Sequence record: MZ443769.1
DNA: 64,000 nucleotides
Reading direction: 5' to 3' (one strand)
Shown here: piece after piece, positions 1,768 to 32,544 of the stretch
Numbering within the stretch: position 1 is the first letter of the stretch
How the letters are laid out: every line of letters begins with the position of its first letter
The notes under the pieces: generated by a model
The model's database searches: none
What the model saw: the letters and a program-made list of their open reading frames with translations, nothing else
What the model was told of the DNA's origin: nothing
Translations under genes and position numbers: made by a program

Positions 1768-2551
1768 AGGACCGTACGGCCTCGTTGAGACTGCCCAACT
1801 AATTCCCCGCTGGACTTACCCGATCAAGCACGGTCAGGTGAAGAGTGTTGATGCGTGGGAATTAAATACGTTAGAAAACATTGTAACGCCTGTTCGCATG
1901 ATTAACGATATTCATGTGATGCACAACAGAGAGTATGAGGACAATGAAGATGCAATCGACCTCGACGAAGACGCAGAAGCGCTGTCAAAGACTGAATCAA
2001 GACTTCTTATCAAGCCTCGACTCAATCAAATCCGAGCGCGTGGCAAGCAAGATCACATTAGTCCTGAAAACGTCTTCGACGTTGACTCGGAAGTAATCGA
2101 TCAAACGATAGACACAATCAACGATCAGGCTGCGAAGTTCCGCAAGCACTTCTTAGATTCTGTGTTTAGTCCAATACTTGGTTACGACATTGCAGCGGGT
2201 GAAGCCGAAGCGATTGCGCGTGACTGTCTTAAAACCGACTTAGAGATAGACAGCGAACTCGTTCCGTATATCGAACGTATCGGCCTTGCCAACATCATCG
2301 GTAGTATGATGGAAGAAAGCAAGTCAGTGCCCGAAGCTGTTCGTGCTGACGTACTCAAAGACTGGCTTATCAAGTCGTTCGATGATATTCGTGCAGACCT
2401 CAAAGGCGATAAAACTTTCCACAAGATGAAAGCGCAGATGCGCAGACTGATGCACGGCAATGATGAACTCGTTGCTAAAGGTACAGGCATCGGTACAACT
2501 CGTGGTATGTCAGAAGTGAGAAACAGACAAAAAGAAAATGGCCAAGCCTAA
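1748..2551 (+). CDS. hypothetical helical protein (position would fit a terminase small subunit)
   Basis: Long ORF overlapping the terminase start; function inferred from position only. Confidence 0.55.
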   Translation: MTTKKFEGPYGLVETAQLIPRWTYPIKHGQVKSVDAWELNTLENIVTPVRMINDIHVMHNREYEDNEDAIDLDEDAEALSKTESRLLIKPRLNQIRARGKQDHISPENVFDVDSEVIDQTIDTINDQAAKFRKHFLDSVFSPILGYDIAAGEAEAIARDCLKTDLEIDSELVPYIERIGLANIIGSMMEESKSVPEAVRADVLKDWLIKSFDDIRADLKGDKTFHKMKAQMRRLMHGNDELVAKGTGIGTTRGMSEVRNRQKENGQA

Positions 2552-5369
2552 GAAGGGCCCCGCCTTCACACTACGTCCTAAACGAATAGCTGCATTCGAT
2601 GCGCTGCTTGGCGATGACGTTGGTGTGGAGGAATCCTCAGACTTAGACTTCCTGTCTGATAATAATTCAAGTGGTATTAACTTCCTTGAGAAGGGTGAGA
2701 CAAACATTGTTGACTTGGTTGAGAGTGCTCTTGAACAGCGCACACTTGTACCACGCGACTTGAAGTTCGATGATAGCTCAATGCCTCGTGCAAAGAACTT
2801 CCTCGAATGGTGTACTAGCCCGGACTTCTTGAAAGCTGAACCGTATCTTGAGCAGGCCATGATCGGCCTTCGCTTGTTCGGAGAGATCTGTGTACGATGT
2901 TCCCCGAACTTGCAATGGCAACATACAGAAAACCACGAGCCGCAGGAAGGCGTCGCTGCTATTGAGAGGAATCTTCATCTTCTCCATAACGGTGTATGCC
3001 CTCACTGCGGCGCTCGGCGTTCTGACATGATAAAAAAGGGAGAGATGAACTTCTACAACGAGCTGGCCGTGAATGCCGGACAACGTTGTGTTAGTGCTGC
3101 AACTCCTGTGACAACGCATAACGGTATCATGCCTATCGGTCATATGATGATTGGTCATGACAGCCCAGGTTTCCACAAACCGCGTAACAAGTATCGTGCC
3201 CACAACGGACGTGAGATAAAGAAAGTCAGTCAAGTCTATGTGTCTACTGAAAGCCCGACACGTATCATTACGCTGTCTAACGGTATGCACTTAGAAGCAA
3301 CACACGAACATCCTCTGCGTACTGAAACAGGCTTTAAGAAAGCGCTTGTGATTGCAGAAGGTGAACGTGTAGAAGTTGCTCTCGGTATAAACTCGTGGGG
3401 CAAGATCATTACGCCTGTATCTATCTATGATGCTGGCCAGTCTACCCGTGAAGATGCCTTGCGATATCTGACTGACAGATCGCTTCCGTTTAACAGCGGT
3501 TATATGTACGTCACTGACGACGAGAACGTTGCTCAGATGGCGTGGTCGATTCTGATTAACGCAGGCTACCTGCCACAGATTAATCGTGACGACACGAAGA
3601 ACGAGTACAGCATTCTGTTTGATCTCAATGCAGAGTGTTTGAGACGTTCTGTGCATCTGCCTGTGATATCGAATGCAGAAGGTGAAACGAAAGTAACGTA
3701 TGACTTGCAGATGGAGGGAATGCCGCAGTTCGTGGCGTCAGGTCTTATTCATCATAACAGCGGTAAGTCCGTCGTTGTTGCAATGATCTCAACGTATCTA
3801 ACGCATCGCCTGCTTATGTCGCAATCACCGACAGGCATCTTGGGTATCAGTAGCACAACTGTTCTTCACGGAACGTTCGTTGCTCTTACTCAGAAGCAAG
3901 CGTCTGATACACTGTGGACTCCGTACTTCAACTACGTGATGGGTAGTCCGTGGTTCCAAGCATATCATGATCTGATTCGCAGACACGAACGCAAGTTCGG
4001 TATTGAAGTGATGAAGGTTCGTGATACGTTCATTCTTTATGGTCATCGTAGTTTCGTTATTTATCCAGCAGGACCTGATGGTCGTATTCTTCGTGGTCGT
4101 ACACGTATACTCAGCGTAATCGACGAAGTGGCGTATTTCGATAACGACGCCCAATCCAAGAAAATCAAAGTCAGTGCCAACGCTGTATACGGCGCACTCG
4201 ACCGCTCACTCGCTACTGTTCGATCAGCAGAGAAGCGGCAAGTCGAGGCCGGATATGACGAAGCCTTCACGGGTTACTTCTGCAACATCAGTAGCCCGGT
4301 ACACGCTCGTGACAAAATCAACGAGCTGTTGCGTATGGCTTTAGGTAGTAAGACTCTGTTAGGCATTCATGCGCCGACGTGGAAGATGAACCCAACCATG
4401 CCGCGTGATAGTGAGTTCCTGATAGAAGCATTCCGTCGTGACCCTGTAGGTGCAGCGCGTGACTATGGTGCAGAAGCTCCGTTGTCTGCAAGTCCGTTTA
4501 TCACTCAGCCTACATTCATCTCAGATGCAATACGTGAGAAGGGTCGTAACCTGTGTCAGTACACGCATCATATCATTCGTCACAAAGACGGTGAGAGACA
4601 GCGTTACGGTAGTCTCGTTAAAGCTGCTTCGACAACTCGCGCTTCTATTCTCGCAATCGACGCAGGTTATTCGAATAACAGTTTTGCTTTGGTGACAGGC
4701 TCACGCGGTGATGATGGTATTATCAGCGTAGACTGTCTGGTTGAGATTGTGCCTAAGCCAGGTATACCTCTCAACTACACAATGATATTTGACGAACTGC
4801 TTATTCCTCTTTGTAAGTTGCGTAACGTGCGCGTGATGCTTGCCGACCAATGGCAGTCACTCAAGTTGCTACAGGATGCTAAACTCAAAGTTGAATCCAT
4901 CGAAGAATCTGATCAGTACAGCCTGAAATATCAGGACATGTGGACAGTGAAGACGATGTTTGAATCGCAGCCGTCTCGCATTAGTTTGCCTCGCATGGTG
5001 AACACTGCGAATATCAATGAGACGTTGCAGTATGATGGTGATGAATATCCTCAGTGCTTTGAGAACAAGCCTACTGAACACTTGATCATGCAGTTGCAGA
5101 CAGTGCAAGATACTGGCCGCAGCGTTATCAAGAACACAGGTGCAACAGATGACTTGTGGCGTGCAATGGCTCTCATGGTATACGGGTTCGAATGCGGTGA
5201 GTACGAAGACTACCTGATTAAAGCAGCGGAGACTTCTATCAACCGTGACCCGAATCGTCTTGGTCGTGTAGCGCACAGACTCAACTCAGGCACAGCGAGC
5301 ACAACACGCGCTGCTCTTCCTGGTCGAGTGCTAGGTTCAGCCGCTACTCGTATGCTTGGACGTAAGTAG
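2538..5369 (+). CDS. terL: terminase large subunit, intein-containing
   Basis: Walker A GQR|SGKS split by an intein, Walker B VIDEVAYF, nuclease motif ILAIDAGY, DDLWRAMAL; upstream of portal-like gene. Confidence 0.88.
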   Translation: MAKPKKGPAFTLRPKRIAAFDALLGDDVGVEESSDLDFLSDNNSSGINFLEKGETNIVDLVESALEQRTLVPRDLKFDDSSMPRAKNFLEWCTSPDFLKAEPYLEQAMIGLRLFGEICVRCSPNLQWQHTENHEPQEGVAAIERNLHLLHNGVCPHCGARRSDMIKKGEMNFYNELAVNAGQRCVSAATPVTTHNGIMPIGHMMIGHDSPGFHKPRNKYRAHNGREIKKVSQVYVSTESPTRIITLSNGMHLEATHEHPLRTETGFKKALVIAEGERVEVALGINSWGKIITPVSIYDAGQSTREDALRYLTDRSLPFNSGYMYVTDDENVAQMAWSILINAGYLPQINRDDTKNEYSILFDLNAECLRRSVHLPVISNAEGETKVTYDLQMEGMPQFVASGLIHHNSGKSVVVAMISTYLTHRLLMSQSPTGILGISSTTVLHGTFVALTQKQASDTLWTPYFNYVMGSPWFQAYHDLIRRHERKFGIEVMKVRDTFILYGHRSFVIYPAGPDGRILRGRTRILSVIDEVAYFDNDAQSKKIKVSANAVYGALDRSLATVRSAEKRQVEAGYDEAFTGYFCNISSPVHARDKINELLRMALGSKTLLGIHAPTWKMNPTMPRDSEFLIEAFRRDPVGAARDYGAEAPLSASPFITQPTFISDAIREKGRNLCQYTHHIIRHKDGERQRYGSLVKAASTTRASILAIDAGYSNNSFALVTGSRGDDGIISVDCLVEIVPKPGIPLNYTMIFDELLIPLCKLRNVRVMLADQWQSLKLLQDAKLKVESIEESDQYSLKYQDMWTVKTMFESQPSRISLPRMVNTANINETLQYDGDEYPQCFENKPTEHLIMQLQTVQDTGRSVIKNTGATDDLWRAMALMVYGFECGEYEDYLIKAAETSINRDPNRLGRVAHRLNSGTASTTRAALPGRVLGSAATRMLGRK
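3087..3758 (+). mobile_element. 224-aa intein in terminase Walker A, endonuclease degenerate or partial
   Basis: Starts CVSAATPV, block B LEATHEHPL, ends GLIHHN followed by +1 Ser; removal restores AGQRSGKS. Confidence 0.92.
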
Positions 5370-5415
5370 GTTAGCTTAGTAATTTGAATGAGTTAACCTC
5401 AAGAGGATTTAAATC

Positions 5416-5628
5416 ATGACCAGATTCTACAACCCATTGCTTGAAACAACTGTAAAGTCACAGTCTAGCGCAGACAAGGTTAAGAGTGAGAGTTCAGCAT
5501 TCAATGTTGATAACCCGAACTTCTGTCCTAAGTGCGCTTCTGCAACTGTACCGACCAAGTTACTTGACGGCGAAGATGTTATGTATTGCACATCATGCCG
5601 CGTGAGTCTTGCTATTCCTTTGAAGTGA
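5416..5628 (+). CDS. small zinc-ribbon protein
   Basis: CPKC...CTSC; GAGGA RBS. Confidence 0.75.
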   Translation: MTRFYNPLLETTVKSQSSADKVKSESSAFNVDNPNFCPKCASATVPTKLLDGEDVMYCTSCRVSLAIPLK

Positions 5629-5635
5629 GGTCAAA

Positions 5636-7576
5636 ATGGGCATTCGAGTAGGACGCCAACAAAACGGCGAATCACAAGAATCAAACAAGAAGAAAGAACG
5701 GTCAGCGACTGGTTCTGCTTCACTACCTCGCGCAGTCGGAGAAGCTATACGAAGCCAAAGCTCGAAGTCTCAGATGCGTTTTGTGTCAGAGTCTTCGGGC
5801 GCGGGTGCTTCTGCTGGTAACATGCAAGTAGGTACTGTCCCTCTTGATATCGACTTAGAGCCGATGATGGAAGGGATGGACTACGAAGCTGATGACCGAC
5901 AGCTTTTCAACGTCTATCGAGATATTTACCACTTCGACCCGATCTGCGGATCGTATGTCGATTTGTTCTCAACGCTTCCGTTCTCTGACGTTAGTTTCAG
6001 CGGCGCGAAAGACAGCGTACTCGAACCGTATTACGAAGTGAACGAACGTCTGTCACTGACAACCAGTATGCCGAACATCACAACTGATATTCAGGTTACT
6101 GGTGCGTTCTGTGGTTCGATGCTGTACAACAAAGATCGTAAGAAGTTCATCGATCTGATGACGCACCGCTACGATAACATTGACGTTACTCCAATCCCGT
6201 TCTTGTCGCAGGACCCGATGTTCGAACTGCGCATTCCACAGTACGTTAAGCAAGCCTTCGCAAAAGACGGCAAGCGCATTGACGCACTAAAGAAAGAACT
6301 CGGTCAGTCATTCGTTGATAAACTTGTTAACGATGTGACGATGGAGCTTGACCCGATTGGTACTATCTACATCCCGCGTAAAACATTCAGCTTCGGCGAA
6401 GGTATCTCTGTCTTCCGTCGCGTTCTGCCTATCTGGCTGATCGAAAAGAACCTGTATCGCGGTACGTTGATTGAATCAGGTCGTCGTCAACGTGGTATTC
6501 TTCACGCTCAGTTAGGTGATGGTGATCAGTGGGAGCCGTCTCAAGAAGAGATGGACTTCATGACAGACCTGTTGCTGTCTGCTGATAGTGACCCAATCGG
6601 CTCGATCATCACAACACGTCTCGGCGTGAACATCAGTGAGTTCCGTCAGGGTGGGGACTTCTGGAAGATTACTGATATCTGGGACCAGACTGCTACATTC
6701 AAAATGCGAGCAATGGGTATCAGTGAAGCATTCCTTAGTGGTGAAGCGAACTATGATTCCGGTGCTGCTGGCCTGACGATTTTCGTTGAAGCTATGCGAG
6801 CGTTCCGTGATCATCTGACGCGCAAGATCTACTACGAGAAAGTATTTCCCGTTATCAGCCTGATGAATGGTCTTGCTGTTCAGCGTAACGGTAAGATCAT
6901 CAAGAAGAACGGTATGATGGACGGAGGTTTAACTGAAATCATGTACAGACTGAATGACGGCAGCAAGCTGTTTATTCCGAACGTACACTGGTCTAAGCAA
7001 CTGCGTCCTGACGTTGATCAGGCGATGATGGAAAACCTTCGTGCTATGACGGAGCTGGGTGTTCCTGTTCCGCTTCGTGCTATCGCTGCTGCTGGTGGTT
7101 ATAACTTTGATCAGATTCTCATGGATCAAGATGAAGACCTCGCAATGCGTCGTAAGATTATGGCGTACAAGAAACGCATGGCAGAAATCGACAAAGAGTT
7201 TGCTCTGCCTGAAGGTGGCGCAGAAGGTGCTGATAGTTTCAGTTCTGTTAGCTCTCTGTCTAAAGATGCGAAGCGCGATCTCAAACGCCGTCAGCAACAC
7301 ATCGCTGGTGTTGGTCTGTCAAGTGCTGTACTCGGCGGTGAACGTCGTAAAGGCTTGAAGCGCGACTACGGTGAGCACTCTGAAATCTTCGAAGTCGGTA
7401 AGACAGGTAAGAAGAAGCACGTCTTCCGCCAGAACGTTGCTAACTCCAAAGCTAACGATGCAATCTGGAAAGCTGCGAAGAACTACGAAGCCAACAAAAC
7501 AATGCCGCTGGATAATGGTAAGGTATCATTCGAACCAACTCAGCAAGAAATTAGGGCAATGTCGAGGGTCCGTTAA
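5636..7576 (+). CDS. probable portal protein
   Basis: 646 aa, two genes after terL; MRAMGISEAFLSGEANY resembles the portal 'ALGVPxxFL' segment. Confidence 0.65.
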   Translation: MGIRVGRQQNGESQESNKKKERSATGSASLPRAVGEAIRSQSSKSQMRFVSESSGAGASAGNMQVGTVPLDIDLEPMMEGMDYEADDRQLFNVYRDIYHFDPICGSYVDLFSTLPFSDVSFSGAKDSVLEPYYEVNERLSLTTSMPNITTDIQVTGAFCGSMLYNKDRKKFIDLMTHRYDNIDVTPIPFLSQDPMFELRIPQYVKQAFAKDGKRIDALKKELGQSFVDKLVNDVTMELDPIGTIYIPRKTFSFGEGISVFRRVLPIWLIEKNLYRGTLIESGRRQRGILHAQLGDGDQWEPSQEEMDFMTDLLLSADSDPIGSIITTRLGVNISEFRQGGDFWKITDIWDQTATFKMRAMGISEAFLSGEANYDSGAAGLTIFVEAMRAFRDHLTRKIYYEKVFPVISLMNGLAVQRNGKIIKKNGMMDGGLTEIMYRLNDGSKLFIPNVHWSKQLRPDVDQAMMENLRAMTELGVPVPLRAIAAAGGYNFDQILMDQDEDLAMRRKIMAYKKRMAEIDKEFALPEGGAEGADSFSSVSSLSKDAKRDLKRRQQHIAGVGLSSAVLGGERRKGLKRDYGEHSEIFEVGKTGKKKHVFRQNVANSKANDAIWKAAKNYEANKTMPLDNGKVSFEPTQQEIRAMSRVR

Positions 7577-9982: not shown

Positions 9983-10498
9983 ATGACGGTTAACGATAAA
10001 CAACTACAGGAATGGTTGAGTGCGGCGCAAGTCGCATTCACTATGGGAAGTCGTCACACAGATAAAGGTCTTGCGCTTATCCTTGCTATCCACAAGGACG
10101 TGTCAACCAATAAGCCAGATCAGGTTGCTGACTTCCTTGATGACCTTGCTTCTGAAATGCGTATGTACGATTTGATTCGTCGTCGCTTCAAACCCGAGCT
10201 GTACACTGACTTTGCTGTCGGTGTTGATGTTCAGATCTATATTGCATACATGGCTCACTCGCCAGGCGAAGCTGTTATGGCTATGACGTATCTGCACCTG
10301 AATAAGTGCAAGAACATTAAAGATATGGTCAAACGCCTGCTGCCGAACGGCTACCCTGCTGATGACGCGATGGGCCTGTTGTGGAATCTCCAGAAAATTC
10401 AGAAAGAGCGCGGTTCACTCGACCCTGACAATATGGTAGACTATCCTAATACTGTAAATAGTCTGTACAACAGCATTCACAATTCGGGAGCGAAGTAA
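9983..10498 (+). CDS. hypothetical protein
   Basis: GAGG RBS, coupled stop/start. Confidence 0.7.
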   Translation: MTVNDKQLQEWLSAAQVAFTMGSRHTDKGLALILAIHKDVSTNKPDQVADFLDDLASEMRMYDLIRRRFKPELYTDFAVGVDVQIYIAYMAHSPGEAVMAMTYLHLNKCKNIKDMVKRLLPNGYPADDAMGLLWNLQKIQKERGSLDPDNMVDYPNTVNSLYNSIHNSGAK

Positions 10499-11082
10499 TG
10501 GACTTATCTGCGATTGGTTTCGCATCGAAGCAGTTCCGAGTTATTCCTGTGGAGAAGGGTAACTTAGTGACTGACTTCATTCAAGGCAAGTTTCAAGTCA
10601 TTGGTGTTGAGTGTAATACTCGTGGTGCATACGGCTCTCCAATTCAACAGAGCTTATCGCGCCGTTTCCCTGAGATGGCTAAGAAGATCGCAGACATTGA
10701 TTATAACCAAGTTATGATCGGTAAGACAGTGATGCTTCCAGTTCAGACCCAGCATCGTCGTCGTTTGTTCGTAGCGAACATGTTTATTGCACGGGGATTT
10801 GGGTTAGGTCAGAACGATGATGTTAAGACAGGTCCTGTCAATCGTTTCTCCGAACGCCATTTGATTCAAGCGCTTGAAAACTTACTGGAACAATGCGAGA
10901 AGATGAACATCGCACCAGACAAGCAGATTGCGGTTCAGCGTGTGTATGGCGGATTAGGTGGGGTTCCTTGGTCAGAAGTGTGTCCAGTGTTGGATAGTGT
11001 TTGTGAAAAGCACAAGTTCAATCTTCTCGCATACTTGCCGAAGAACTATGATACTAACTTTGTGCGGGGTTCTGCGCGATAA
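10498..11082 (+). CDS. macrodomain protein (Poa1p/TARG1-like), divergent
   Basis: CNTRGAYGSPIQQSLSRRFPEM and IAVQRVYGGLGGVPWSEV resemble the macro motifs NxxGxMGxGIA and IGCGLGGLxW. Confidence 0.7.
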   Translation: MDLSAIGFASKQFRVIPVEKGNLVTDFIQGKFQVIGVECNTRGAYGSPIQQSLSRRFPEMAKKIADIDYNQVMIGKTVMLPVQTQHRRRLFVANMFIARGFGLGQNDDVKTGPVNRFSERHLIQALENLLEQCEKMNIAPDKQIAVQRVYGGLGGVPWSEVCPVLDSVCEKHKFNLLAYLPKNYDTNFVRGSAR

Positions 11083-11094
11083 CTTTGGGGTGTA

Positions 11095-11430
11095 TTGATG
11101 AACACAATACGCGGATTCGATTGGTTGTTCTACGGAGACGGTACCGATAGCGGCCAAAATTCAATAACGAGTGTCGTGTGTGAACCACATGCGAAATCAA
11201 TGCAGATCGAGATCGTGCGTGGTTGCGCTCGACCTGTAATTCAAGCGATACAAGAAAACGATATCTTGTATGTTCAGATCCCAGAGGGTCTTTATCGACT
11301 GCGTTACGCCTGCTCTTTCCGCAAGCTTGATTCAGCAGTTTTCCCACAAGAGTTAACGTCAATCAAGTTGAAGCTGGTTGAACTAGATTTCTTAGCGGGC
11401 GTCACAACTCACGATAAGACTCTGGGGTAA
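11095..11430 (+). CDS. hypothetical protein
   Basis: Fills gap, same strand. Confidence 0.6.
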   Translation: MMNTIRGFDWLFYGDGTDSGQNSITSVVCEPHAKSMQIEIVRGCARPVIQAIQENDILYVQIPEGLYRLRYACSFRKLDSAVFPQELTSIKLKLVELDFLAGVTTHDKTLG

Positions 11431-11436
11431 CTCAAA

Positions 11437-12189
11437 ATGATTACAGTAAAGAACATTGAGCGCCGTTTAAAAACTATAGATTATACCAAGCCGAACCCTC
11501 CACAGGAACTGCTTGAGTCCCTTGTAAAAGATGGTCGTTCCCGAATCTTGAAGTCAGCGCAAGAAGATTGCCTGTGTAGTCTTTCTAATCGCTACTTTGA
11601 GTTCTGTCTTTCGCAAGTCGGTTCGTTCTGTACTGCACCTTATAATGCAGTTGAGATAGCGTTGCGCATTGGTGTGCAGCCTATCTATGTAGCCGCTGCG
11701 ATTTATATTTATGGCTTGGACTGGCAGCAAAAGTTCTTAGGCCTTAAACGATTCGACCGCCTTGACCGCGGTGAATACACAGTGTGGAAATCTTCTGATG
11801 CTTGGTTTAACCTTGCTGAATGCAAACACCGTGTAGAATCCGTTACTAATGCGCTGTCTGGTCCGCAGTTTGTCTTGCGTCAAGCTGTGCGTCGCGGTGA
11901 TATGATTGCTATCTTGAAGATCGCTGAAACGAATCCGCATCGCATGATGTCCATTCTGCCTCAGCGTCGTGGTCTGCTATACGATGACCCTCGCATGTCT
12001 CTTGCTAAAAAGAAACGTGAGCAAGAAGCCGCAGCGTCAATTGCAAAAGGCATCTCTACGAATAAGCCTGTCGGTCGCAGTGAGTACGGCGATATCGACT
12101 ATCAGTTTAATGGCGCGTTGCATAAAGCTGAAATGGGTCGCACAAGCGTTAGCGGTATTGAGTGGTCTGAAAAGAAACCTTTATTCTAA
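11437..12189 (+). CDS. hypothetical protein
   Basis: 250-aa ORF in operon. Confidence 0.7.
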   Translation: MITVKNIERRLKTIDYTKPNPPQELLESLVKDGRSRILKSAQEDCLCSLSNRYFEFCLSQVGSFCTAPYNAVEIALRIGVQPIYVAAAIYIYGLDWQQKFLGLKRFDRLDRGEYTVWKSSDAWFNLAECKHRVESVTNALSGPQFVLRQAVRRGDMIAILKIAETNPHRMMSILPQRRGLLYDDPRMSLAKKKREQEAAASIAKGISTNKPVGRSEYGDIDYQFNGALHKAEMGRTSVSGIEWSEKKPLF

Positions 12190-12200
12190 CGGAGCAGTAA

Positions 12201-12590
12201 ATGGATCGTAATAAATTGAAGTTGTTGATGGACAGTCTCAACGGTAACTTCTCCGATATTGATGCAGACCTGATGGACACAACTGTAGGCAATCTCACTC
12301 GTTCTGAAAAGAACATTGTGTTCCTCGTTAGCGCAGAGTACATCACTCAGCATATAGTGAATCTCGGTCGTGCTGTCGAGAAGGCTAACGCTTCTTGGTT
12401 CGAGCCTATCGAAAAACTCGAAACGTTGAAAGAAGGTTTGTTCGGTCACGTTAACGGTGTTCCTGTGTATAGCAACTGGATGCACATTACGCCAGACGAA
12501 TCTGTTAATCATAAGCGACCACTGCTTGGCGTTTACTTCACAGACAAGAACATGATCAAAAGACTTCCCTTAGAAGCTTTTTGTGATTAA
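12201..12590 (+). CDS. hypothetical protein with a capsid-P-domain-like segment
   Basis: GGAG RBS; GLFGHVNGVPVYSN. Confidence 0.65.
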   Translation: MDRNKLKLLMDSLNGNFSDIDADLMDTTVGNLTRSEKNIVFLVSAEYITQHIVNLGRAVEKANASWFEPIEKLETLKEGLFGHVNGVPVYSNWMHITPDESVNHKRPLLGVYFTDKNMIKRLPLEAFCD

Positions 12591-12640
12591 AATCTGCGAA
12601 CGGTAATTTTGTTCAGTCAAAACAAATAACGGAACATCAC

Positions 12641-13411
12641 ATGAGCAATGTAGATAAAACAATGCCTCAAGGTAAGTGGGAATTCAACGAGCCTGTTGCT
12701 GCTGTGTTTGATAACATGCTGGCCAACTCGATTCCTTCTTATGACCGTATGCGTGACCTGACGTTTCGTCTGGGTAAACGTTTCGTGACACCTGGCTCAG
12801 CGATTGTTGATCTCGGTGCATCACTCGGTCGTGCTATCGAACCATTCTGTGAACACTTCGGTCCGTACATGTATCATCATGCAGCAGACCGTCCTGAACC
12901 AGATTCTGAAACAGGCAATCTCTATTCGCTGTATGAGACTGCTCCTGCAATGCGTGAGCGTCTCGCACAGAACGCAGTGTTGAACGCAGCCGAAGCGAAA
13001 CTCGAATCAGAATCGCTTGTGGACGTTGATACGTTCCGTTTCAGTGAGCAAGTCGAATGCTCTTTGATTCTCAGCGTGTTAACTTTGCAGTTCACTCCGA
13101 TTGAACACCGTCAGCACATTCTGGAAAAGGTCTATGACTCTTTGCAGTCTGGTGGTGCATTCATTCTCGTTGAGAAAGTTCTCGGGGATGATAATTATCT
13201 GGACAAGCTGCTGGTAGATACCTACTACAGCATGAAAGGTGATAACGGTTATTCACAAGAAAGCATTGCGACTAAGCGCAAGTCACTCGAAGGTGTTCTC
13301 GTTCCAGTGAAAGCCGCGTGGAATGAAGAACTGCTCCGTAAAGCGGGCTTCAATCGCGTCGAATGTTTCTATCGCGATCTCAACTTTGCAGGTTGGATTG
13401 CTGTTAAATAA
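12641..13411 (+). CDS. cmoA: carboxy-S-adenosyl-L-methionine synthase (CmoA family)
   Basis: WEFNEPVAAVFDNMLANSIPSY, VDLGASLG, LTLQF, GGAFILVEK, NGYSQESIATKRKSLE and LLRKAGF...FYRDLNF align along the full length with CmoA. Confidence 0.9.
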   Translation: MSNVDKTMPQGKWEFNEPVAAVFDNMLANSIPSYDRMRDLTFRLGKRFVTPGSAIVDLGASLGRAIEPFCEHFGPYMYHHAADRPEPDSETGNLYSLYETAPAMRERLAQNAVLNAAEAKLESESLVDVDTFRFSEQVECSLILSVLTLQFTPIEHRQHILEKVYDSLQSGGAFILVEKVLGDDNYLDKLLVDTYYSMKGDNGYSQESIATKRKSLEGVLVPVKAAWNEELLRKAGFNRVECFYRDLNFAGWIAVK

Positions 13412-13436
13412 ATCTGTAAACAGTAGAGGTTAGAGC

Positions 13437-14309
13437 ATGAGTTCTACAGCGGTCATACGCGAGAAAGTTCGCTCGGCATTATTTGCGAGTCATAACAAGC
13501 CTGTCGATATGCGACAAGCGTTGATGGACACTTTGAGTTGGATTCCGAAAGAAGACCAAGTTACTGTGTTCATGTCGGGTGGCATTGATAGTCATGCTTG
13601 CTTGTTTGCTTGCATCGACCTCGGCCTCAAAGTTAACGTGCTGTCGTTCACACTCGACTCACACGAAAGCTCTGACTTCAAGGCAGCGAGACACGCAGCC
13701 GAAGTTTTCGACCTTGACTTCACGCCGATCGTTCTTCCAACGAACGAAGCCCATCTGAAAAGCTGGGTACGTTTCGCAGTACACAAGCTCGGGCTCACGA
13801 ACAAAAGTGAGATCGAATGTTCTTGGCCGCTGTACACCGCAATCCGTCATCTCGAAGGAAAGACCAAACATATCGTACTCGGTCTTGGCGGCGACTCGTA
13901 CTTCTTAATGGCAAAGAGCGCTTCGATGCACTGCAAAGACTTAGTGTTAGAGCAACGTCGAAAAGCTACGCGCCGTGTGCTGTCTCAGAACGTTCTCGTT
14001 AAGCGTGAAGCTTTTGCTCGTGGTATCTACGCGCATCTTCCGTACTTCGAGTTCGGCCGCACTTACGCAGAGCTGCAAATGGAAACCGACTTTAAAAAGA
14101 TCAACAGTCCGCAGAAGTCGTTTTACAATCAGGCATTCCCTGAGTATCGCAAGCGCTGTAAAGTACGCGGTCACCAAAACTTCCAGCTGGGAGACACTAA
14201 CATTAGCGGCATCTTTAGCGATGTGTTGTTGAAGTCCGACTGGAACACAAGAAACTTGAAAGCAATCGTTGGCGTATACAATGACGTTGCATCAGGAATC
14301 TGTAAATAG
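13437..14309 (+). CDS. asparagine-synthetase-like ATP-dependent amide ligase lacking the glutaminase domain
   Basis: PP-loop FMSGGIDS, SDFKAARHAA, IVLGLGGDSYF; 290 aa with no N-terminal Ntn domain. Confidence 0.82.
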   Translation: MSSTAVIREKVRSALFASHNKPVDMRQALMDTLSWIPKEDQVTVFMSGGIDSHACLFACIDLGLKVNVLSFTLDSHESSDFKAARHAAEVFDLDFTPIVLPTNEAHLKSWVRFAVHKLGLTNKSEIECSWPLYTAIRHLEGKTKHIVLGLGGDSYFLMAKSASMHCKDLVLEQRRKATRRVLSQNVLVKREAFARGIYAHLPYFEFGRTYAELQMETDFKKINSPQKSFYNQAFPEYRKRCKVRGHQNFQLGDTNISGIFSDVLLKSDWNTRNLKAIVGVYNDVASGICK

Positions 14310-14316
14310 TAATTTG
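14299..14316 (+). promoter_or_regulatory. overlapping motif I (TCTGTAAATA) and motif II (TAGTAATTTG) upstream of the DPA peptide
   Basis: Both recurring motifs overlap about 60-77 nt before ATG 14376. Confidence 0.6.
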
Positions 14317-14375
14317 AGTAAGCACTGATAATCAGTCTGCTCTTAACATAAACCCAAATCCTTAAGGAGCGCATC

Positions 14376-14525
14376 ATGCGTCATACCGACCCAGCAGTAC
14401 GTTTTAACGATCCAGCCATCACTGACCCAGCAGCCCGTTTCGATCCGGCCGACCCTGCTGATCCAGCAATCGGTTTCGATCCGGCTGACCCAGCAGATCC
14501 TGCTGACCCGGCTGCTCGCTTCTAA
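14376..14525 (+). CDS. 49-aa Asp-Pro-Ala repeat peptide (absent from ORF track)
   Basis: AAGGAG RBS at 14364; MRHTDPAVRFNDPAITDPAARFDPADPADPAIGFDPADPADPADPAARF; synonymous codons vary between repeats; terminator follows. Confidence 0.85.
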   Translation: MRHTDPAVRFNDPAITDPAARFDPADPADPAIGFDPADPADPADPAARF

Positions 14526-14541
14526 TAGCGAAACTTAATAC

Positions 14542-14571
14542 AAGGGGGCTGCTCATTGCAGTCCCTTTTTA
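14542..14571 (+). terminator. intrinsic terminator after the DPA peptide
   Basis: GGGGCTGC-TCATT-GCAGTCCC then TTTTT. Confidence 0.8.
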
Positions 14572-14593
14572 CTTTCCTGTTGAGGAACGTGCT

Positions 14594-15232
14594 ATGTCTT
14601 TTGAGCTTGTAAACATTCTGCCGATACTGTCGCAATCAACTACAGTTCATCGTGCAGCCGACGGCACTGATGTTCACATCGTCCGAAACTTCTTCACACA
14701 TACGGAATGCGAAGCACTAATCGCTGAGGGCATTCAGTATCTCGAACCGAGCCGTGTTGGTGGACCGAACGATACAACTAAGATCGATAAAACAGTTCGC
14801 TCGTCCTCTACTGCGATGTTAAGCGAAGTATCTCAACACCCTGCTGTACTCGAAGCTATTCGTCGCATTGATGACGCATACGGTTACCCACATCTGTTCA
14901 GCAACCCGCTGCAACTCAATCGCTATCAAGTCGGTGAAGAGTTCGTAGCGCATCACGACTGGCATGACCCTGTTCGCCAGCATGATCGTATTCAACGTGA
15001 AGGCCAACGCACTTGGACCTTCTTGATGTACCTCAACGATGACTTCGAAGGAGGTCAGACTGAATTCCCGTTGATGGATCTCACAGTAACTCCTGAGCGC
15101 GGTATGCTTGTTCTGTGGAACAACTTGCTTGTTGACGGTTCAGTCAATGAGACAACGCTACACGCATCGAAGCCTGTAACGTCAGGTACGAAGTTCATGA
15201 TGACCAAGTGGTTTAAGAACAAAGTGCTGTGA
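14594..15232 (+). CDS. 2OG-Fe(II) oxygenase, prolyl-4-hydroxylase family
   Basis: FFTHTECEALI, VRSSSTAML, LQLNRYQVGEEFVAHHD (HxD), TFLMYLND..EGGQTEFP, TLHASKPVTSGTKFMMTKW. Confidence 0.9.
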   Translation: MSFELVNILPILSQSTTVHRAADGTDVHIVRNFFTHTECEALIAEGIQYLEPSRVGGPNDTTKIDKTVRSSSTAMLSEVSQHPAVLEAIRRIDDAYGYPHLFSNPLQLNRYQVGEEFVAHHDWHDPVRQHDRIQREGQRTWTFLMYLNDDFEGGQTEFPLMDLTVTPERGMLVLWNNLLVDGSVNETTLHASKPVTSGTKFMMTKWFKNKVL

Positions 15233-15238
15233 TAATCT

Positions 15239-15258
15239 TGGGTAGCTAAGGCTGCCCA
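15239..15258 (+). terminator. hairpin, GGGTRGC/GCTGCCC family
   Basis: TGGGTAGC-TAAG-GCTGCCCA. Confidence 0.6.
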
Positions 15259-15283
15259 TTGTCGTATCTAAGGTTCAGGAAAG

Positions 15284-15293
15284 TCTGTAAATA
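15284..15293 (+). promoter_or_regulatory. motif I putative phage promoter
   Basis: TCTGTAAATA intergenic, 40 nt before ATG. Confidence 0.6.
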
Positions 15294-15323
15294 CAGAACA
15301 AGATTCCTCTGAGGATAACTCAA

Positions 15324-15932
15324 ATGATAGTTCGTATTATTGACGGAGATATTGGTGCGACGTATGTTGCCGAGCAACTGCAAGCTGCTGGCATTGAGTG
15401 TACAGTTCATTCACCAAACAATCCCCGTGCTCGTGCGCGTTACGCACCTTATCCTTCTATGTCTATTAGTCTTGACCAACTTCTTATCGAGCGTCACATC
15501 GGTGATGTACTCGGTACGTATCGCGGTATCTTCCTGATTAGTAGCTATGCAGGTTCTTTGATTGCAAACAGCATGATTGACCTTTGTGGTCAGTCCAACA
15601 ATATCATTACGTGTGATAAACTCGACTGCGGTAATGTGCCTGTTGCAGCCACCAAGCTTTCTGTAAATATCTACAAGAAGCAACGCCAGCTGGCTCGCAT
15701 CGCTCGTCGTGTTCCGCACTATGAGTCCGACCATGAGTTTATCATTGCGGACAATACTGTTCAGGCTCTCTCATATCCAGAGCTAGTACAGAAAGAAGAT
15801 ATCGAACTTAACAACAAGCCGAAGTTTCTTTCTAGTCCTTCGCTGATCGTTGCTGCAAAGCGTCTGGGTATCAAAAGCAACACGTACCATAACTATGCCG
15901 GCCTTGTGAAAGAGTTTCTCGCCGCGCGGTAA
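15324..15932 (+). CDS. hypothetical protein with degenerate Rossmann-like N-terminus
   Basis: MIVRIIDGDIGATYVAEQLQAAGIECTV has beta-alpha-beta pattern; GAGGA RBS. Confidence 0.6.
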   Translation: MIVRIIDGDIGATYVAEQLQAAGIECTVHSPNNPRARARYAPYPSMSISLDQLLIERHIGDVLGTYRGIFLISSYAGSLIANSMIDLCGQSNNIITCDKLDCGNVPVAATKLSVNIYKKQRQLARIARRVPHYESDHEFIIADNTVQALSYPELVQKEDIELNNKPKFLSSPSLIVAAKRLGIKSNTYHNYAGLVKEFLAAR

Positions 15933-16684: not shown

Positions 16685-17183
16685 ATGAAACAACAACTGC
16701 TTGATCGTGGCTTCGACCACGAACGATATCATTGCTGGTTAAGTGAGACACAGATGACTGTGCCTCTATTCGGATTTGATCGTCAACTTCATGGCGTTCA
16801 AGTCTACACACCAGACGCACCGAAACAAACGTCGAATCCGAAAGATGCTCGTTACTTCACGCGCACGTTCGGTGGCAAGCAGTTGGTGTGGGGAACAGAA
16901 ATTGAACCTATACGGGTCGACCGTATTCTTAACTGAGTCCGTGTTCAAGGCATGTGCTGTTCATCGTCTTGGACTCAACGCTTGGTCTGTATTAGGTTCT
17001 AATGTCAACGATGCTCTGTACCTTCAACTGCAACTGCTTGGCCTGAGATTTGTCTGTCTCGGTGATGCTGATAAAGCGGGTGAAGAGTTCAGTCAAACGT
17101 TTGGTCTTGGTGCAGTATCAAAAGACCTTGACGAAATGACTGACGCAGAGCTACTGGATTTAACTCGTCCTTTCTTGAGGTAA
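16685..17183 (+). pseudogene. TOPRIM-domain (primase-like) gene split by a +1 frameshift near 16898-16901
   Basis: Frame of 16685 gives VPLFGFDRQLHGVQVYTP..RYFT..VWGTE; frame of 16776 continues VFLTESVFKA..LGS..CLGDADKAG..KDLDE. Confidence 0.75.
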
Positions 17184-29708: not shown

Positions 29709-30413
29709 ATGGCAAAAATTGCTAAAGCAAAAGCAAAGGACGGGAAAAAGAAAGGCGCTATGGCTATTGATTTGAAATCTTTCAAGTCGGCTAAACAGCT
29801 TAAAGGCGCTAAGTACAATCCACGTTTCATTACAGACAGTCGCTTGAGCGCACTCGAAAGTTCGTTGGGTAGCTTCGGTGACTTGTCTGGCATCGTGTTT
29901 AACAACAGCGTCAGTTCAGGCGTTCTTATCTCCGGTCACCAGCGTCTCAAGTCAATCAACGATTGGGAAACGCGCATCGAACTCCAGCCTACTTCTGACA
30001 AGTACGGTACAGTCGCTTTGGGTTACGTTCATGCAACGCATCCGAAGTCGAGCAAGACGATTAGCATTCCTCTGCGTATCGTAAACTGGAACGATAAGAA
30101 AGCCGAGTACGCTGCGAACATTGCTGCGAATGCGCACGGCGGTGAGTTCGATAACAAGAAGCTTGCGAATCTGGTTGAGAAACTTGACCTGACTTCTATC
30201 AAGCCTCAACTGCTCGGACTCGACCCGCTGGAAATCCGTGGTCTGCAACAGAAGCTGAAATCACAAGCACTTGTTGAAGGCGAGAAACGCGCAGGCAAAA
30301 CTACTGGTCAGATGAACGGTAGTACGGGCGCATTCAAAGAATACACACCAGATGAAGTCGGCGATAAGCTGTCATGCACCTGCCCACGCTGTGGATTTAA
30401 GTTCGAGGGATAA
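29709..30413 (+). CDS. ParB/Srx-like N-terminal domain protein with C-terminal Zn knuckle
   Basis: LKGAKYNPRFI..LESSL..FG..LISGHQRL..ANIAAN; ends CTCPRCGFKF. Confidence 0.8.
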   Translation: MAKIAKAKAKDGKKKGAMAIDLKSFKSAKQLKGAKYNPRFITDSRLSALESSLGSFGDLSGIVFNNSVSSGVLISGHQRLKSINDWETRIELQPTSDKYGTVALGYVHATHPKSSKTISIPLRIVNWNDKKAEYAANIAANAHGGEFDNKKLANLVEKLDLTSIKPQLLGLDPLEIRGLQQKLKSQALVEGEKRAGKTTGQMNGSTGAFKEYTPDEVGDKLSCTCPRCGFKFEG

Positions 30414-30414
30414 T

Positions 30415-32544
30415 ATGATCATCAAGCCGCCTACAATGAAAGAGATCAACGCGCAAGACAACAATTGGCGTGGCATGAGCTTCTTCGCAGGCTGTGGTGG
30501 TTCTTCTACCGGTCTCAAATGGGCCGGTATTAACATCATCTTGAGTAATGAGTTCGTAGACGTGGCGCGTGAGTCTTATCAAGCGAACCACCCATCTACG
30601 TTAGTTCTCCCTCACGATATCCGTCGTCTCGACCCGAAGAAGATTATGCAGCACTTCGGGATGGGTAAGGGTGAACTTGATTTCCTCGATGGTAGCCCAC
30701 CATGCTTCACTGAGAACACTCTGATTCACACTGCTGAGGGGATGAAGTTCATCTCTGATGTTAATGTCGGCGACATGGCAATGACTTCTGTTGGTCGTTA
30801 TCATGAAGTGTACGATACTATGGTGCGTCCTTATGTTGGTACGATGCACAAGATCGAAACACTGCTCGGCGCGAATAACGCAACGCCTGAACATCCGTTC
30901 TTCATTCGCCGCGTTCAACCTACCGGCTTGTGGTCTGAACCTTTCTGGTGTGATGCGAAAGATGTACAAGAAGGTGATTTACTCTCAACACCTCGAACAA
31001 CTCCTGACATGGGTGCTGACGCTTATCATGGTCAAATGTCATTGCTGACGCCTGTCATTCAGAGCTGGGTAACTTTCCCTGAGTTCTGGTGGGCTATCGG
31101 TCATTGGTGTGCGCACGGTACTCTTGAAGTTGTGCAGGGTGTCGATGTTGTTAGCTTCGAATCGCACACAGCTCAGGAAAACGATCTGATTGAGCAGGTG
31201 TTTGATGTTCTGAAAATCAGTAGCATCAACAGCGTAGACACAACCGTTGACCAGCGCAAGACGTATCGCGTTGTCATGGATTCAGAACTGTTTGCGTTCC
31301 TGAGCAAGTTCGTGGCACAGGGTAAGAACAACCTGTCTCGTCGTCTGCCGTCGATGATCTTCCACTTAGCTACTGAACTGAAACAGCAATTCATTCTCGG
31401 CTATCTCGGTCGTGACTACGTTAGTGCAATGGGCATGAGCCAGTTGATTAGCACAGACAACCGTCGCTTCCTCACTGAAATGAATTACCTGACGTGCTCT
31501 GCATTCAACAGACCTCTGTTCGATGGTATGTTGTTCTCTGATGTGAACTACGGTTCAGCGCTTACGCCTCGTGATCGCAATCAGAAGAAAGAGCATGTCG
31601 GCTATCTGCTGCTGCAAGATGAAAACAATTTCTTCTACGAGTTCAACGATAACGATCCACATCTGTGGGTTCAAGTGATTGAGAACCTAGCGTATCAGAC
31701 AACCTGTGACGTGTACAACTTCTCGGTCAGTGAAGACGAGACGTATGTGGCGAACAGCATTGTCGTGCATAACTGCAAAGGCTTCTCGACTGCTGGCGTG
31801 AAAGAAGAAGGTTGGGGTAAAGAAGTCAAGTACAGCGAGAACAAGAAACAGCAGGTTGATGACCTGTTCGATCAGTATTGCCGTATGATTAGTGGCTTCC
31901 AGCCTAAAGTGTTCACAGCGGAAAACGTCAGTGGTCTTGTGAAAGGATCTTCTAAAGGTTACTTCCTTGAGATCATGAAAACGTTTGACGAGCTTGGCTA
32001 CTATGTCAAAGCACCGTTGATTAACAGTGCATGGCTTGGTGTTCCACAGTCGCGTGAGCGTATCATCTTCATGGGTGTGCGTAAAGACGTTGCACATGCG
32101 TTGGGATATCGCTCAATCGGTACTGCTGTGCCTGCTGTCGTGCCTGCTTCAAGCATGGCTGTGCTTGCTGATGCTCTGCCTAACATCCTGCGATACAAAT
32201 CGGCTGAGAAAGATATCATCAAGTATAAGCCCGCGATGAACGGACCTATGCCTACGATAACTGCTGCTGATGCGATTGCGTATGAGACGGCACGATTCTC
32301 TTCTGCTGGATTTATCGAGGACAACAAGGGCATTCGTCGTAAGCTTACGATTGATGAACTGAAAGTTGTTTCCGGTCTGCCTGCTGATTACAAGCTGGTC
32401 GGTAAGTTCGAACAACAGTGGGAACGTCTCGGTCGTATCTGCGTACCTCACATGACTCATGCTGCTGCGACTGCGTTGATCAATCATATTCTTGTGCCTT
32501 ACGCCAAGAAGAAGAAACAGAAACCGGGCGCTCTCTTCCGCTAG
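30415..32544 (+). CDS. C5 cytosine transferase (DNMT fold), intein-containing; candidate carboxymethyltransferase (CmoX-like)
   Basis: Motif I FFAGCGG, IV GSPP|C, VI ENVSGL, VIII VPQSRERI, IX RKLTIDEL, X LGRICVP (Arg instead of Asn); ATG at 30415 follows the ParB stop. Confidence 0.88.
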   Translation: MIIKPPTMKEINAQDNNWRGMSFFAGCGGSSTGLKWAGINIILSNEFVDVARESYQANHPSTLVLPHDIRRLDPKKIMQHFGMGKGELDFLDGSPPCFTENTLIHTAEGMKFISDVNVGDMAMTSVGRYHEVYDTMVRPYVGTMHKIETLLGANNATPEHPFFIRRVQPTGLWSEPFWCDAKDVQEGDLLSTPRTTPDMGADAYHGQMSLLTPVIQSWVTFPEFWWAIGHWCAHGTLEVVQGVDVVSFESHTAQENDLIEQVFDVLKISSINSVDTTVDQRKTYRVVMDSELFAFLSKFVAQGKNNLSRRLPSMIFHLATELKQQFILGYLGRDYVSAMGMSQLISTDNRRFLTEMNYLTCSAFNRPLFDGMLFSDVNYGSALTPRDRNQKKEHVGYLLLQDENNFFYEFNDNDPHLWVQVIENLAYQTTCDVYNFSVSEDETYVANSIVVHNCKGFSTAGVKEEGWGKEVKYSENKKQQVDDLFDQYCRMISGFQPKVFTAENVSGLVKGSSKGYFLEIMKTFDELGYYVKAPLINSAWLGVPQSRERIIFMGVRKDVAHALGYRSIGTAVPAVVPASSMAVLADALPNILRYKSAEKDIIKYKPAMNGPMPTITAADAIAYETARFSSAGFIEDNKGIRRKLTIDELKVVSGLPADYKLVGKFEQQWERLGRICVPHMTHAAATALINHILVPYAKKKKQKPGALFR
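30703..31773 (+). mobile_element. 357-aa intein with degenerate LAGLIDADG endonuclease, inserted before the catalytic Cys
   Basis: Starts CFTENTLI, block B ATPEHPF, ends ANSIVVHN with +1 Cys; blocks C and E read AIGHWCAHG and FILGYLGRD. Confidence 0.93.

Follow-up and report, generated by a model that had tools for sequence, protein, structure and literature searches.

A CmoY-family gene for a probable amide ligase, with a proline-repeat micro-ORF and a prolyl 4-hydroxylase homologue, in Erwinia jumbo phages

Introduction

Why does a jumbo phage carry a lone synthetase domain of the asparagine synthetase type immediately downstream of cmoA, the gene for carboxy-S-adenosylmethionine (Cx-SAM) synthase, and what would such an enzyme join to what? 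The question is raised by a 64,000-nucleotide stretch of sequence record MZ443769.1 (hereafter the window), in which a gene of this kind, here called the ligase, is followed by a micro-open reading frame (micro-ORF) and by a homologue of prolyl 4-hydroxylase (P4H), a 2-oxoglutarate (2OG)-Fe(II) oxygenase (Table 1). Bases 12600-15300 of the window are 100% identical, at equal coordinates, to Erwinia phage pEp_SNUABM_52 (MZ443769). Their identity to vB_EamM_Y3, a jumbo myovirus of 261 kb that infects Erwinia amylovora and belongs to the genus Sasquatchvirus, is 99.4%.

The pathway to which the ligase is related has already been published. Yang et al. (Nat Commun, Dec 2025; PMC12783734) described three enzymes of Synechococcus phage S-B43, in which carboxy-SAM is the product of CmoA, 5-carboxymethylcytosine (5cxmC) in DNA is formed by CmoX, a homologue of C5 methyltransferases that has an SPPC motif and Arg350, and CmoY, a 271-amino acid homologue of asparagine synthetase, joins glycine to 5cxmC with ATP, the density of modification being 75% of GC sites. 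The same study found 2,251 such ligases near CmoX genes, where genes with ParBc domains are also frequent, and its authors proposed that other ligase clusters probably use other amines. The cyanophage enzyme, with its glycine, is the single ligase that has been characterized.

An earlier note, made from the letters of the window alone, had read the ligase as an amide ligase that acts on the carboxylate of 5cxmC with an external amine, and had suggested that this amine would define the final base. The ligase reading stood; what the note had missed is the published CmoA/CmoX/CmoY system, the micro-ORF, and the identity of the downstream oxygenase as a prolyl hydroxylase. The evidence assembled here makes it probable that the ligase is an ATP-dependent amide ligase of the CmoY family that completes a CmoA-CmoX pathway on phage DNA, with the working model that the ligase, the micro-ORF peptide, and the P4H homologue act together.

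The ligase is a stand-alone synthetase domain

The ligase is a real and conserved gene with an ATG start, separated from the stop codon of cmoA by 25 nt that include a GAGG ribosome-binding site, and in the open reading frame list for this part of the window the genes around it lie on the plus strand. Its 290-residue product carries the PP-loop motif SGGIDS from residue 47 and the motif GLGGDSYF from residue 149. The only Pfam matches, Asn_synthase (residues 41-159, E 2.9e-5) and QueC (residues 43-100), both fall on the PP-loop half, and neither Pfam nor NCBIfam reveals a GATase domain; the N-terminus, MSSTA, lacks a Cys2 nucleophile. The earlier note's description of the two motifs, the missing glutaminase, and the distance from cmoA was accurate.

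An AlphaFold2 model built from a 123-sequence alignment (pLDDT 96.9, pTM 0.92) fits, over the whole length of the protein, the C-terminal synthetase domains of Escherichia coli AsnB, beta-lactam synthetase, human ASNS, and carbapenam synthetase, with TM scores, normalized to the query, of 0.64-0.68, and fits a 271-residue viral homologue with scores of 0.82/0.88. Two narrower assignments were rejected. A glutamine-dependent AsnB would be expected to exceed the curated cut-offs, yet the ligase reaches 25.1 bits against the TIGR01536 cut-off of 267.1 and 16.7 bits against the AsnB (PRK09431) cut-off of 499, and there is no N-terminal nucleophile (Ntn) glutaminase domain in its 290 residues. A QueC assignment is likewise refuted by a score of 20.9 bits against a cut-off of 150.3, by a match limited to residues 44-100, and by a structural TM of 0.34. 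PADLOC, run on six larger neighboring genes, gave only a weak QueC match for the ligase and a generic 2OG match for the oxygenase.

The closest characterized relative is CmoY of S-B43 (SpCmoY), with which the ligase shares 27% identity in an end-to-end alignment of 266 residues (BLASTP, E 2e-21); the S-B43 cmoY locus was found by tblastn, in the gene order cmoA-cmoY-cmoX. Residues S47, G49, D51, S52, D80, K123, E127, C128, G149, R174, K227, and Q250 are conserved family-wide, other clades included. By these likenesses the ligase is a member of the CmoY family. The earlier note had also called for a phylogeny against CmoY, and a maximum-likelihood tree of 138 family members places the ligase in the family of SpCmoY, in a separate clade of 16 rows with SH-aLRT support of 96. 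The window gene is thus a further member of a known family in a clade of its own, and the ligase reading draws additional support from the pathway partners and fusions described below.

The window encodes the rest of a CmoA-CmoX pathway

A ligase of the CmoY family should be accompanied in its genome by CmoA and by a CmoX that has the SPPC motif and an equivalent of R350, and both are found alongside the window ligase. The CmoA homologue is 28% identical to the assayed SpCmoA (E 4e-25); its score under the curated TIGR00740 cut-off is due to an insertion. The CmoX-type enzyme, a homologue of the DNA cytosine-C5 carboxymethyltransferase, is split by an apparent intein. Residues 21-97 match SpCmoX with 52% identity and end in GSPPC, and residues 454-693, which match it again, begin with C and include ERLGRI and an Arg aligned to SpCmoX R350. 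Consistent with such a split, PF00145 is matched in two pieces, with weak matches to Intein_splicing and Hint_2 as well, and the apparent intein (C-FTENTLIH...VVHN-C) is inserted exactly at the catalytic Cys of SPPC. An insertion at the identical site of a C5 methyltransferase occurs in an unrelated metagenomic jumbo-phage contig (L023). Immediately upstream of the CmoX gene lies a ParB-like gene, which has no Pfam match and shares 41-47% identity with the gene found 5' of the C5 methyltransferase in PaBG and in metagenomic clusters. In published comparisons, genes for a ParB-like protein, a C5 methyltransferase, an asparagine synthase, and a methyltransferase are all present in Y3 and AD1, and their relative JA11 is without them (PMC6143709).

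A profile search of 1.84 billion cluster representatives recovered 769 relatives of the ligase at E<=1e-3 and 428 at E<=1e-10, nearly all of them stand-alone proteins of 255-320 residues. Four independent representatives (P0037, P0045, P0059, and P0143) are fusions of a C5 methyltransferase to the ligase, and two long representatives are fusions to a domain of the uracil-DNA glycosylase (UDG) superfamily; P0136, P0169, and P0135 are named among the natural fusions of these two kinds. The ligase lies beside cmoA, mostly together with a C5 methyltransferase and often after a ParB-like gene, in PaBG, Staphylococcus phage F1, Yersinia phage fHe-Yen9-02, and many metagenomic jumbo-phage contigs, and the three genes stay adjacent in relatives whose gene arrangement varies. 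In two jumbo-phage contigs (L013 and L023) a chorismate mutase (CM_2) is found within the CmoX-cmoA-ligase cluster, where it presumably supplies prephenate, the co-substrate of CmoA, for Cx-SAM synthesis. From the homology to SpCmoY, the CmoA and CmoX-type enzymes of the window, the linkage in relatives, and the fusions, we infer with good support that the ligase acts on 5cxmC in DNA.

These observations also bear on the reading of the gene as an auxiliary metabolic enzyme, either an ammonia-dependent asparagine synthetase on free aspartate, as the annotation 'asparagine synthase' in Y3 and PaBG would have it, or a partner of CmoA on cmo5U-type bases of tRNA, given that bacterial CmoA is a tRNA-modification enzyme. 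The scores for the asparagine synthetase models lie far under their cut-offs, and Leu stands where AsnB has E348 of its SGEGSDE motif, a functional residue in that enzyme. Furthermore, none of the genes at 9983-15932 matched CmoB by Pfam, PHROG, or NCBIfam, the gene set is found together with a C5 methyltransferase for DNA, and a metabolic or tRNA role is, in our judgment, very improbable.

The slot after cmoA is a point of exchange

The related jumbo phages of Erwinia, Dickeya, and Yersinia keep the genes around cmoA collinear, and cmoA itself is 70-94% identical among them, whereas the ligase that follows cmoA is just 30-37% identical to the window ligase, with the exception of Yoloswag (89%). 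Ligases are exchanged as cassettes at a fixed position after cmoA: near-identical cmoA genes are paired with ligases of three deeply separated clades, which differ in their accessory genes. The clade of the window ligase has the micro-ORF and, usually, the P4H homologue. In a second clade, made up of SNUABM_5/35 and fHe-Yen9-02 within a larger, weakly supported grouping with PaBG, SNUABM_5/35 has none. In a third, in which SpCmoY groups with the ligases of AD1 and SNUABM_3, these two phages have DUF1611 with or without alanine-racemase-like and glycosyltransferase-like genes. Such a pattern is as expected for diversification of DNA chemistry under host nuclease pressure, and it fits an amine, and hence a final base, that differs between close relatives; it bears out the earlier note's remark that the amine would define the final base.

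The genes inserted between cmoA and the ligase in relatives (L007, L010, L012, L016, and L034) encode DUF1611 (a two-domain P-loop protein), an alanine-racemase-like protein, and a glycosyltransferase-like protein of 418-420 residues; the 420-residue protein of SNUABM_3 is 27% identical to the glycosyltransferase-like protein of L034. These inserts hint at variants of the modification that bear a D-amino acid or a sugar.

A micro-ORF and a prolyl 4-hydroxylase homologue follow the ligase

The micro-ORF encodes an acidic peptide (net charge about -6) that opens with MRHT, and AAGGAG stands 7 nt before its ATG. The repeats alternate GAC and GAT, CCA, CCG and CCT, and GCA, GCC and GCT codons, and the last ten codons differ from those of the Yoloswag counterpart by five synonymous and no non-synonymous changes. 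Selection thus acts on the peptide. A role as the leader peptide of a transcription attenuator was set aside as less likely on the same ground, the conservation of the repeats at the level of amino acids with synonymous variation, and also because the repeated amino acids differ between loci and the stop codon lies 16 nt before the terminator stem. A Pfam search gave no match for the peptide.

The micro-ORF also has its own promoter-like motif. The motif CTGTAAATA occurs in the window ten times, with 0.43 copies expected, always on the plus strand and mostly just 5' of genes, including the micro-ORF, the Dam gene (18581), and the ParB-CmoX pair (29666), and it probably defines a class of phage promoter that is reminiscent of the T4 late motif TATAAATA. 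A copy with one mismatch, CTGTAAAC, lies in the spacer between cmoA and the ligase. Downstream of the micro-ORF is an intrinsic-terminator-like hairpin, and equivalent hairpins follow the micro-ORFs of other loci.

Positional counterparts of the micro-ORF were found in nine further distinct loci. In every checked member of the window ligase clade, one sub-lineage excepted, a micro-ORF with its own ribosome-binding site and terminator follows the ligase; at about fifty loci from other ligase clades the following gene starts right at the end of the ligase or overlaps it, the overlap being typically 4 nt. Peptides of the acidic X-Pro-X repeat type differ in the repeated unit (Table 1), yet every one of their genes is preceded by a Shine-Dalgarno sequence and followed by a terminator, with synonymous variation among the repeats. 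The Pro-repeat candidates are 22-49 residues long and alike at the N-terminus, with M followed by R, K, or F. Clade members that lack the P4H gene keep a micro-ORF without Pro repeats, namely MRNDKNPF (L035), two tandem MSIGGEGY (L033), and MQDRTGF (in the sister locus L017). A degenerate (DPA)3 scan of viral contigs returned at least 120 loci, and among the matches listed almost all were unrelated frames or large proteins, the only micro-ORFs of this kind being the known ones of Y3, Yoloswag, and L021; the scan is uninformative on distribution.

The product of the next gene matches the P4H of Bacillus anthracis (3itq) with E 1.4e-23, as well as human, algal, and other prolyl 4-hydroxylase chains, and the H-x-D...H triad and the 2OG-binding Lys align. 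Among isolated phages this P4H homologue is found only with the window ligase clade, apart from two weak matches in a Microcystis phage and an unannotated fecal phage contig. It lies downstream of the ligase in the window and in seven distinct loci with a ligase of 56-89% identity (Yoloswag, Sen-NF, L013, L014, L021/L022, L023, and L036). The P4H gene accompanies seven of seven Pro-repeat peptides and none of the three peptides that have at most one Pro. Furthermore, the trio of ligase, peptide, and P4H is contiguous while cmoA and CmoX shift position around it, and in L014, L021, and L022 it lies inside the cluster, in the order ParB-CmoX-ligase-peptide-P4H-cmoA. Salmonella phage Sen-NF (L003, PV359490) has a ligase of 77% and a P4H of 63% identity; its record includes an IS605 transposase next to the oxygenase and gives the impression of a concatenation, not of a native genome. 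Its synteny is unreliable, because the coding sequences abut without intergenic DNA, and Sen-NF was left out of the synteny and micro-ORF comparisons.

A different ligase clade has small basic ORFs, rich in Ala, Lys, and Pro, after the ligase (L018, L024, and L038). These peptides resemble a histone H1 tail, with an N-terminal part of the form H-A/P-L-H/M, and L024 and L037 lie on one contig; the L024 peptide, too, has no Pfam match.

In the literature searched, no description of the ligase/micro-ORF/P4H arrangement was found, and searches on CmoY or Cx-SAM in phages and on prolyl hydroxylases in phage hypermodification returned only PMC12783734 and unrelated work. The association of a micro-ORF and a prolyl hydroxylase with a CmoY-type ligase appears to be undescribed.

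Table 1. Positions of the features discussed, in the window and in the related loci
Locus	Feature	Position	Strand	Remarks
Window	Macro-domain protein	10498..11082	+	phrog_335; O-acetyl-ADP-ribose deacetylase in the Y3 annotation
Window	129-aa ORF	12201..12590	+	just 5' of cmoA
Window	cmoA homologue (carboxy-SAM synthase)	12641..13411	+	TIGR00740, E 2.4e-41; phrog_4752
Window	Stand-alone AsnB-type synthetase-domain (PP-loop) amide ligase, CmoY family, own clade (predicted)	13437..14309	+	homology, fold, context
Window	CTGTAAATA promoter-like motif	14300..14308	+	overlaps ligase stop codon, 67 nt 5' of micro-ORF start
Window	Micro-ORF, 49 aa, acidic, ten Asp-Pro-Ala units	14376..14525	+	gp019 in Y3
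Window	Intrinsic-terminator-like hairpin, 11 pairs and T-run	14542..14568	+	3' of micro-ORF
Window	P4H homologue, 2OG-Fe(II) oxygenase	14594..15232	+	PF13640, E 1.6e-15
Window	Two short overlapping ORFs	16685..16936; 16776/16902..17183	+	'DNA primase' in the Y3 annotation
Window	ParB-like gene 5' of CmoX	29709..30413	+	ParB-like in the Y3 annotation
Window	CmoX-type DNA cytosine-C5 carboxymethyltransferase homologue, split by apparent intein	30415..32544	+	two BLAST segments against SpCmoX
Window	Apparent intein	~30703..31773		within the CmoX gene
Window	CTGTAAATA copies	7820, 10452, 14300, 15285, 15661, 18581, 29666, 34960, 38688, 43018	+	
Yoloswag	Micro-ORF, MRNRF(DPA)n...ARF			P4H downstream
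L021/L022	Micro-ORF, MFKF(DPA)n	6546..6653 (L021)		P4H downstream
L013	Micro-ORF, MRTC(NPE-R/N)n	6983..7090		P4H downstream
L014	Micro-ORF, MRN(APEI)n	7156..7224		P4H downstream
L023	Micro-ORF, (EPE)-rich repeats	6962..7066		P4H downstream
L036	Micro-ORF, (FDPExT)n	4972..5067		P4H downstream
L011	Micro-ORF, acidic X-Pro-X repeat type	4973..5107		
L018	Small basic ORF after ligase	2836..2934		
L024	Small basic ORF after ligase	7036..7188		
L038	Small basic ORF after ligase	4974..5096		
L023	C5 methyltransferase with insertion at the CmoX intein site	2628..4925		
L013	Chorismate mutase (CM_2)	4718..5161		
L023	Chorismate mutase (CM_2)	4934..5200		
AD1 (L010)	cmoA - DUF1611 - ligase	2899..3954 (inserted gene)		
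SNUABM_3 (L007)	cmoA - 420-aa protein - DUF1611 - alanine-racemase-like - ligase	2219..5444 (inserted genes)		
L034	cmoA - glycosyltransferase-like - ligase	2680..3936 (inserted gene)		
SNUABM_5/35	cmoA - ligase			no accessory gene

What the ligase may join to 5cxmC

In the proposed pathway, CmoA would provide carboxy-SAM, and CmoX, after splicing of its intein, would place a carboxymethyl group on cytosines of the phage DNA. The PP-loop of the ligase would then adenylate the carboxylate of 5cxmC, and attack by an amine would give an amide-linked, hypermodified cytosine, which would probably shield the DNA from host nucleases. More speculatively, the P4H homologue may hydroxylate prolines of the micro-ORF peptide, and the peptide, or a derivative or fragment of it, may be the amine partner of the ligase. 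A free amino acid such as glycine and a peptide-derived partner are about equally likely as the amine. With a micro-ORF and usually a prolyl hydroxylase beside ligases of the window clade, the modification that the DNA finally bears may be a novel one.

In the strongest form of the model, 5cxmC is the handle by which a ribosomally made peptide is attached to DNA, joined through its N-terminal amine and hydroxylated on its Pro repeats, which would give a peptidyl cytosine that bears hydroxyproline; the sister arrangement in another ligase clade would then use the basic Ala/Lys/Pro-rich peptides. This form we regard as unlikely, although not negligible.

The ligase could also do just what SpCmoY does, attaching to 5cxmC either glycine or some other small free amine or amino acid, with the micro-ORF and P4H an unrelated pair that travels along, for instance to make a hydroxylated acidic peptide for host takeover or for the virion. 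We rate this possibility at somewhat below even. Glycine is the amine of SpCmoY, and residues that bind the carboxylate of an amino acid have been modelled in the largest and several smaller ligase clusters (PMC12783734). The micro-ORF itself, with its own promoter-like motif, ribosome-binding site, and terminator, resembles a moron. There is also a viral precedent, as a chlorella virus has a P4H that acts on Pro-rich repeat proteins, the substrate candidate being encoded by the P4H's own genome. An unrelated pair is harder to reconcile with the contiguity of the trio around which cmoA and CmoX move, with its place within the cmo cluster in three loci, with the persistence of micro-ORFs after ligases of the clade even where P4H is missing (L033, L035, and L017), with a second ligase clade that has its own conserved basic peptide downstream, and with clade-specific substitutions relative to SpCmoY (W110, H76, and L157).

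Alternatively, the acidic peptide rather than DNA may be the substrate, with the ligase adenylating the Asp/Glu side chains or the C-terminus for amidation or cyclization, as lasso-peptide cyclases do, in the manner of a ribosomally synthesized and post-translationally modified peptide. In favor are the adjacency and hypervariability of the micro-ORF and its high content of Asp and Glu codons; a basic ligase (+9) would also suit an acidic peptide. However, C5-methyltransferase fusions and an invariant linkage to cmoA and CmoX mark the ligase family, the proven homologue SpCmoY works on DNA, MSIGGEGY and MQDRTGF have one acidic residue each, and the 290-residue ligase has no N-terminal domain and, by Pfam and PHROGs, no leader peptidase or RiPP recognition element (RRE) partner nearby. 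Such an activity would, moreover, leave 5cxmC without a ligase in these phages, and we consider it improbable.

Several points weigh against the favored model, in which a CmoY-family ligase acts on 5cxmC-DNA together with the peptide and P4H. Identity of 27% to SpCmoY leaves substrate specificity unfixed. The net charge of the ligase is +9, and some members of its clade have Lys-rich N-terminal tails; positive charge was nevertheless dropped as evidence of DNA binding, since SpCmoY, which acts on DNA, is acidic (pI 5.8). The co-occurrence counts for the trio are not independent, because the loci are related by descent, and peptide and P4H could be a separate module inherited with the ligase. 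One sub-lineage of the clade (L012/P0019) has DUF1611 upstream of the ligase and no micro-ORF. The acidic peptides offer an N-terminal amine only, and it is difficult to see how the DNA could be packaged with a 5-kDa peptide on each site if the density were as in S-B43. Finally, no report on the state of Y3 DNA was found in a literature search that did not extend to the original description of Y3.

Significance

The pathway was described only in December 2025, and the window brings it into cultivable Erwinia jumbo phages, namely Y3, pEp_SNUABM_52, and Yoloswag, which with their close relatives form a tractable set for reading out the chemistry. The association of the micro-ORF with P4H is a concrete and testable lead to a new DNA hypermodification. 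If the peptide is indeed the partner of the ligase, DNA bases would be seen for the first time to carry a peptide adduct that is genetically encoded, the system would offer a natural means of conjugating peptides to DNA at specific sites, and genetically encoded peptide-DNA hypermodification would constitute a new class of nucleic-acid modification.

Other features near the ligase

The 129-residue ORF just upstream of cmoA has no family match and is missing from every related locus in the comparison, which gives it the look of a lineage-specific insertion. The macro-domain protein is 50-69% identical across the related jumbo phages compared and may be a counter-defence gene. The two short ORFs annotated as primase in Y3 may represent one split or frameshifted primase gene.

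Comparison with known systems

SpCmoY (A0A514ABJ0) and the window ligase are both stand-alone, glutaminase-less AsnB-type synthetase domains of ~270-290 residues with an SGGxDS PP-loop, both carry the family-wide conserved residues, and both genes lie directly 3' of cmoA, in phages whose CmoX has SPPC and the key Arg. The window ligase differs in falling into a separate, well-supported clade, in an N-terminal helix extension of 28 residues, in being basic where SpCmoY is acidic, and in having W110 for D, H76 for D, and L157 for G, with H145, R179, and H200 differing as well. Unlike S-B43, where cmoX follows directly, the next genes in the window are the micro-ORF and P4H.

The synthetase fold (Foldseek E 1e-8, TM about 0.65), the PP-loop, and a presumed acyl-adenylate chemistry are shared with E. 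coli AsnB (1CT9) and human ASNS, from which the window ligase departs in having neither an Ntn glutaminase domain nor an ammonia tunnel, and in a carboxylate that would belong to a DNA base rather than to aspartate. Beta-lactam and carbapenam synthetases, which fit the model equally well (TM 0.60-0.68), are likewise relatives of asparagine synthetase that act on a carboxylate other than aspartate without using glutamine; unlike the window ligase, they retain a vestigial N-terminal domain and close an intramolecular amide, a lactam, on small molecules. Lasso-peptide cyclases of the McjC type are two-domain homologues of asparagine synthetase of ~500-600 residues that work with a leader peptidase/RRE partner and a precursor peptide. 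Assignment of the ligase to this group was rejected, as it is a single domain of 290 residues and Pfam and PHROGs reveal no peptidase or RRE among its neighbors. A small peptide gene does lie next to it, and for that reason the cyclases serve as an analogy for an alternative mechanism.

The P4H homologue shares the Fe and 2OG ligands of the B. anthracis enzyme (3ITQ) and of collagen-type P4Hs, and, like the chlorella-virus P4H, it has a candidate substrate with Pro repeats in its own genome. What sets it apart from known P4Hs is that the candidate is the acidic peptide of a micro-ORF that lies between a putative DNA-modification ligase and the hydroxylase.

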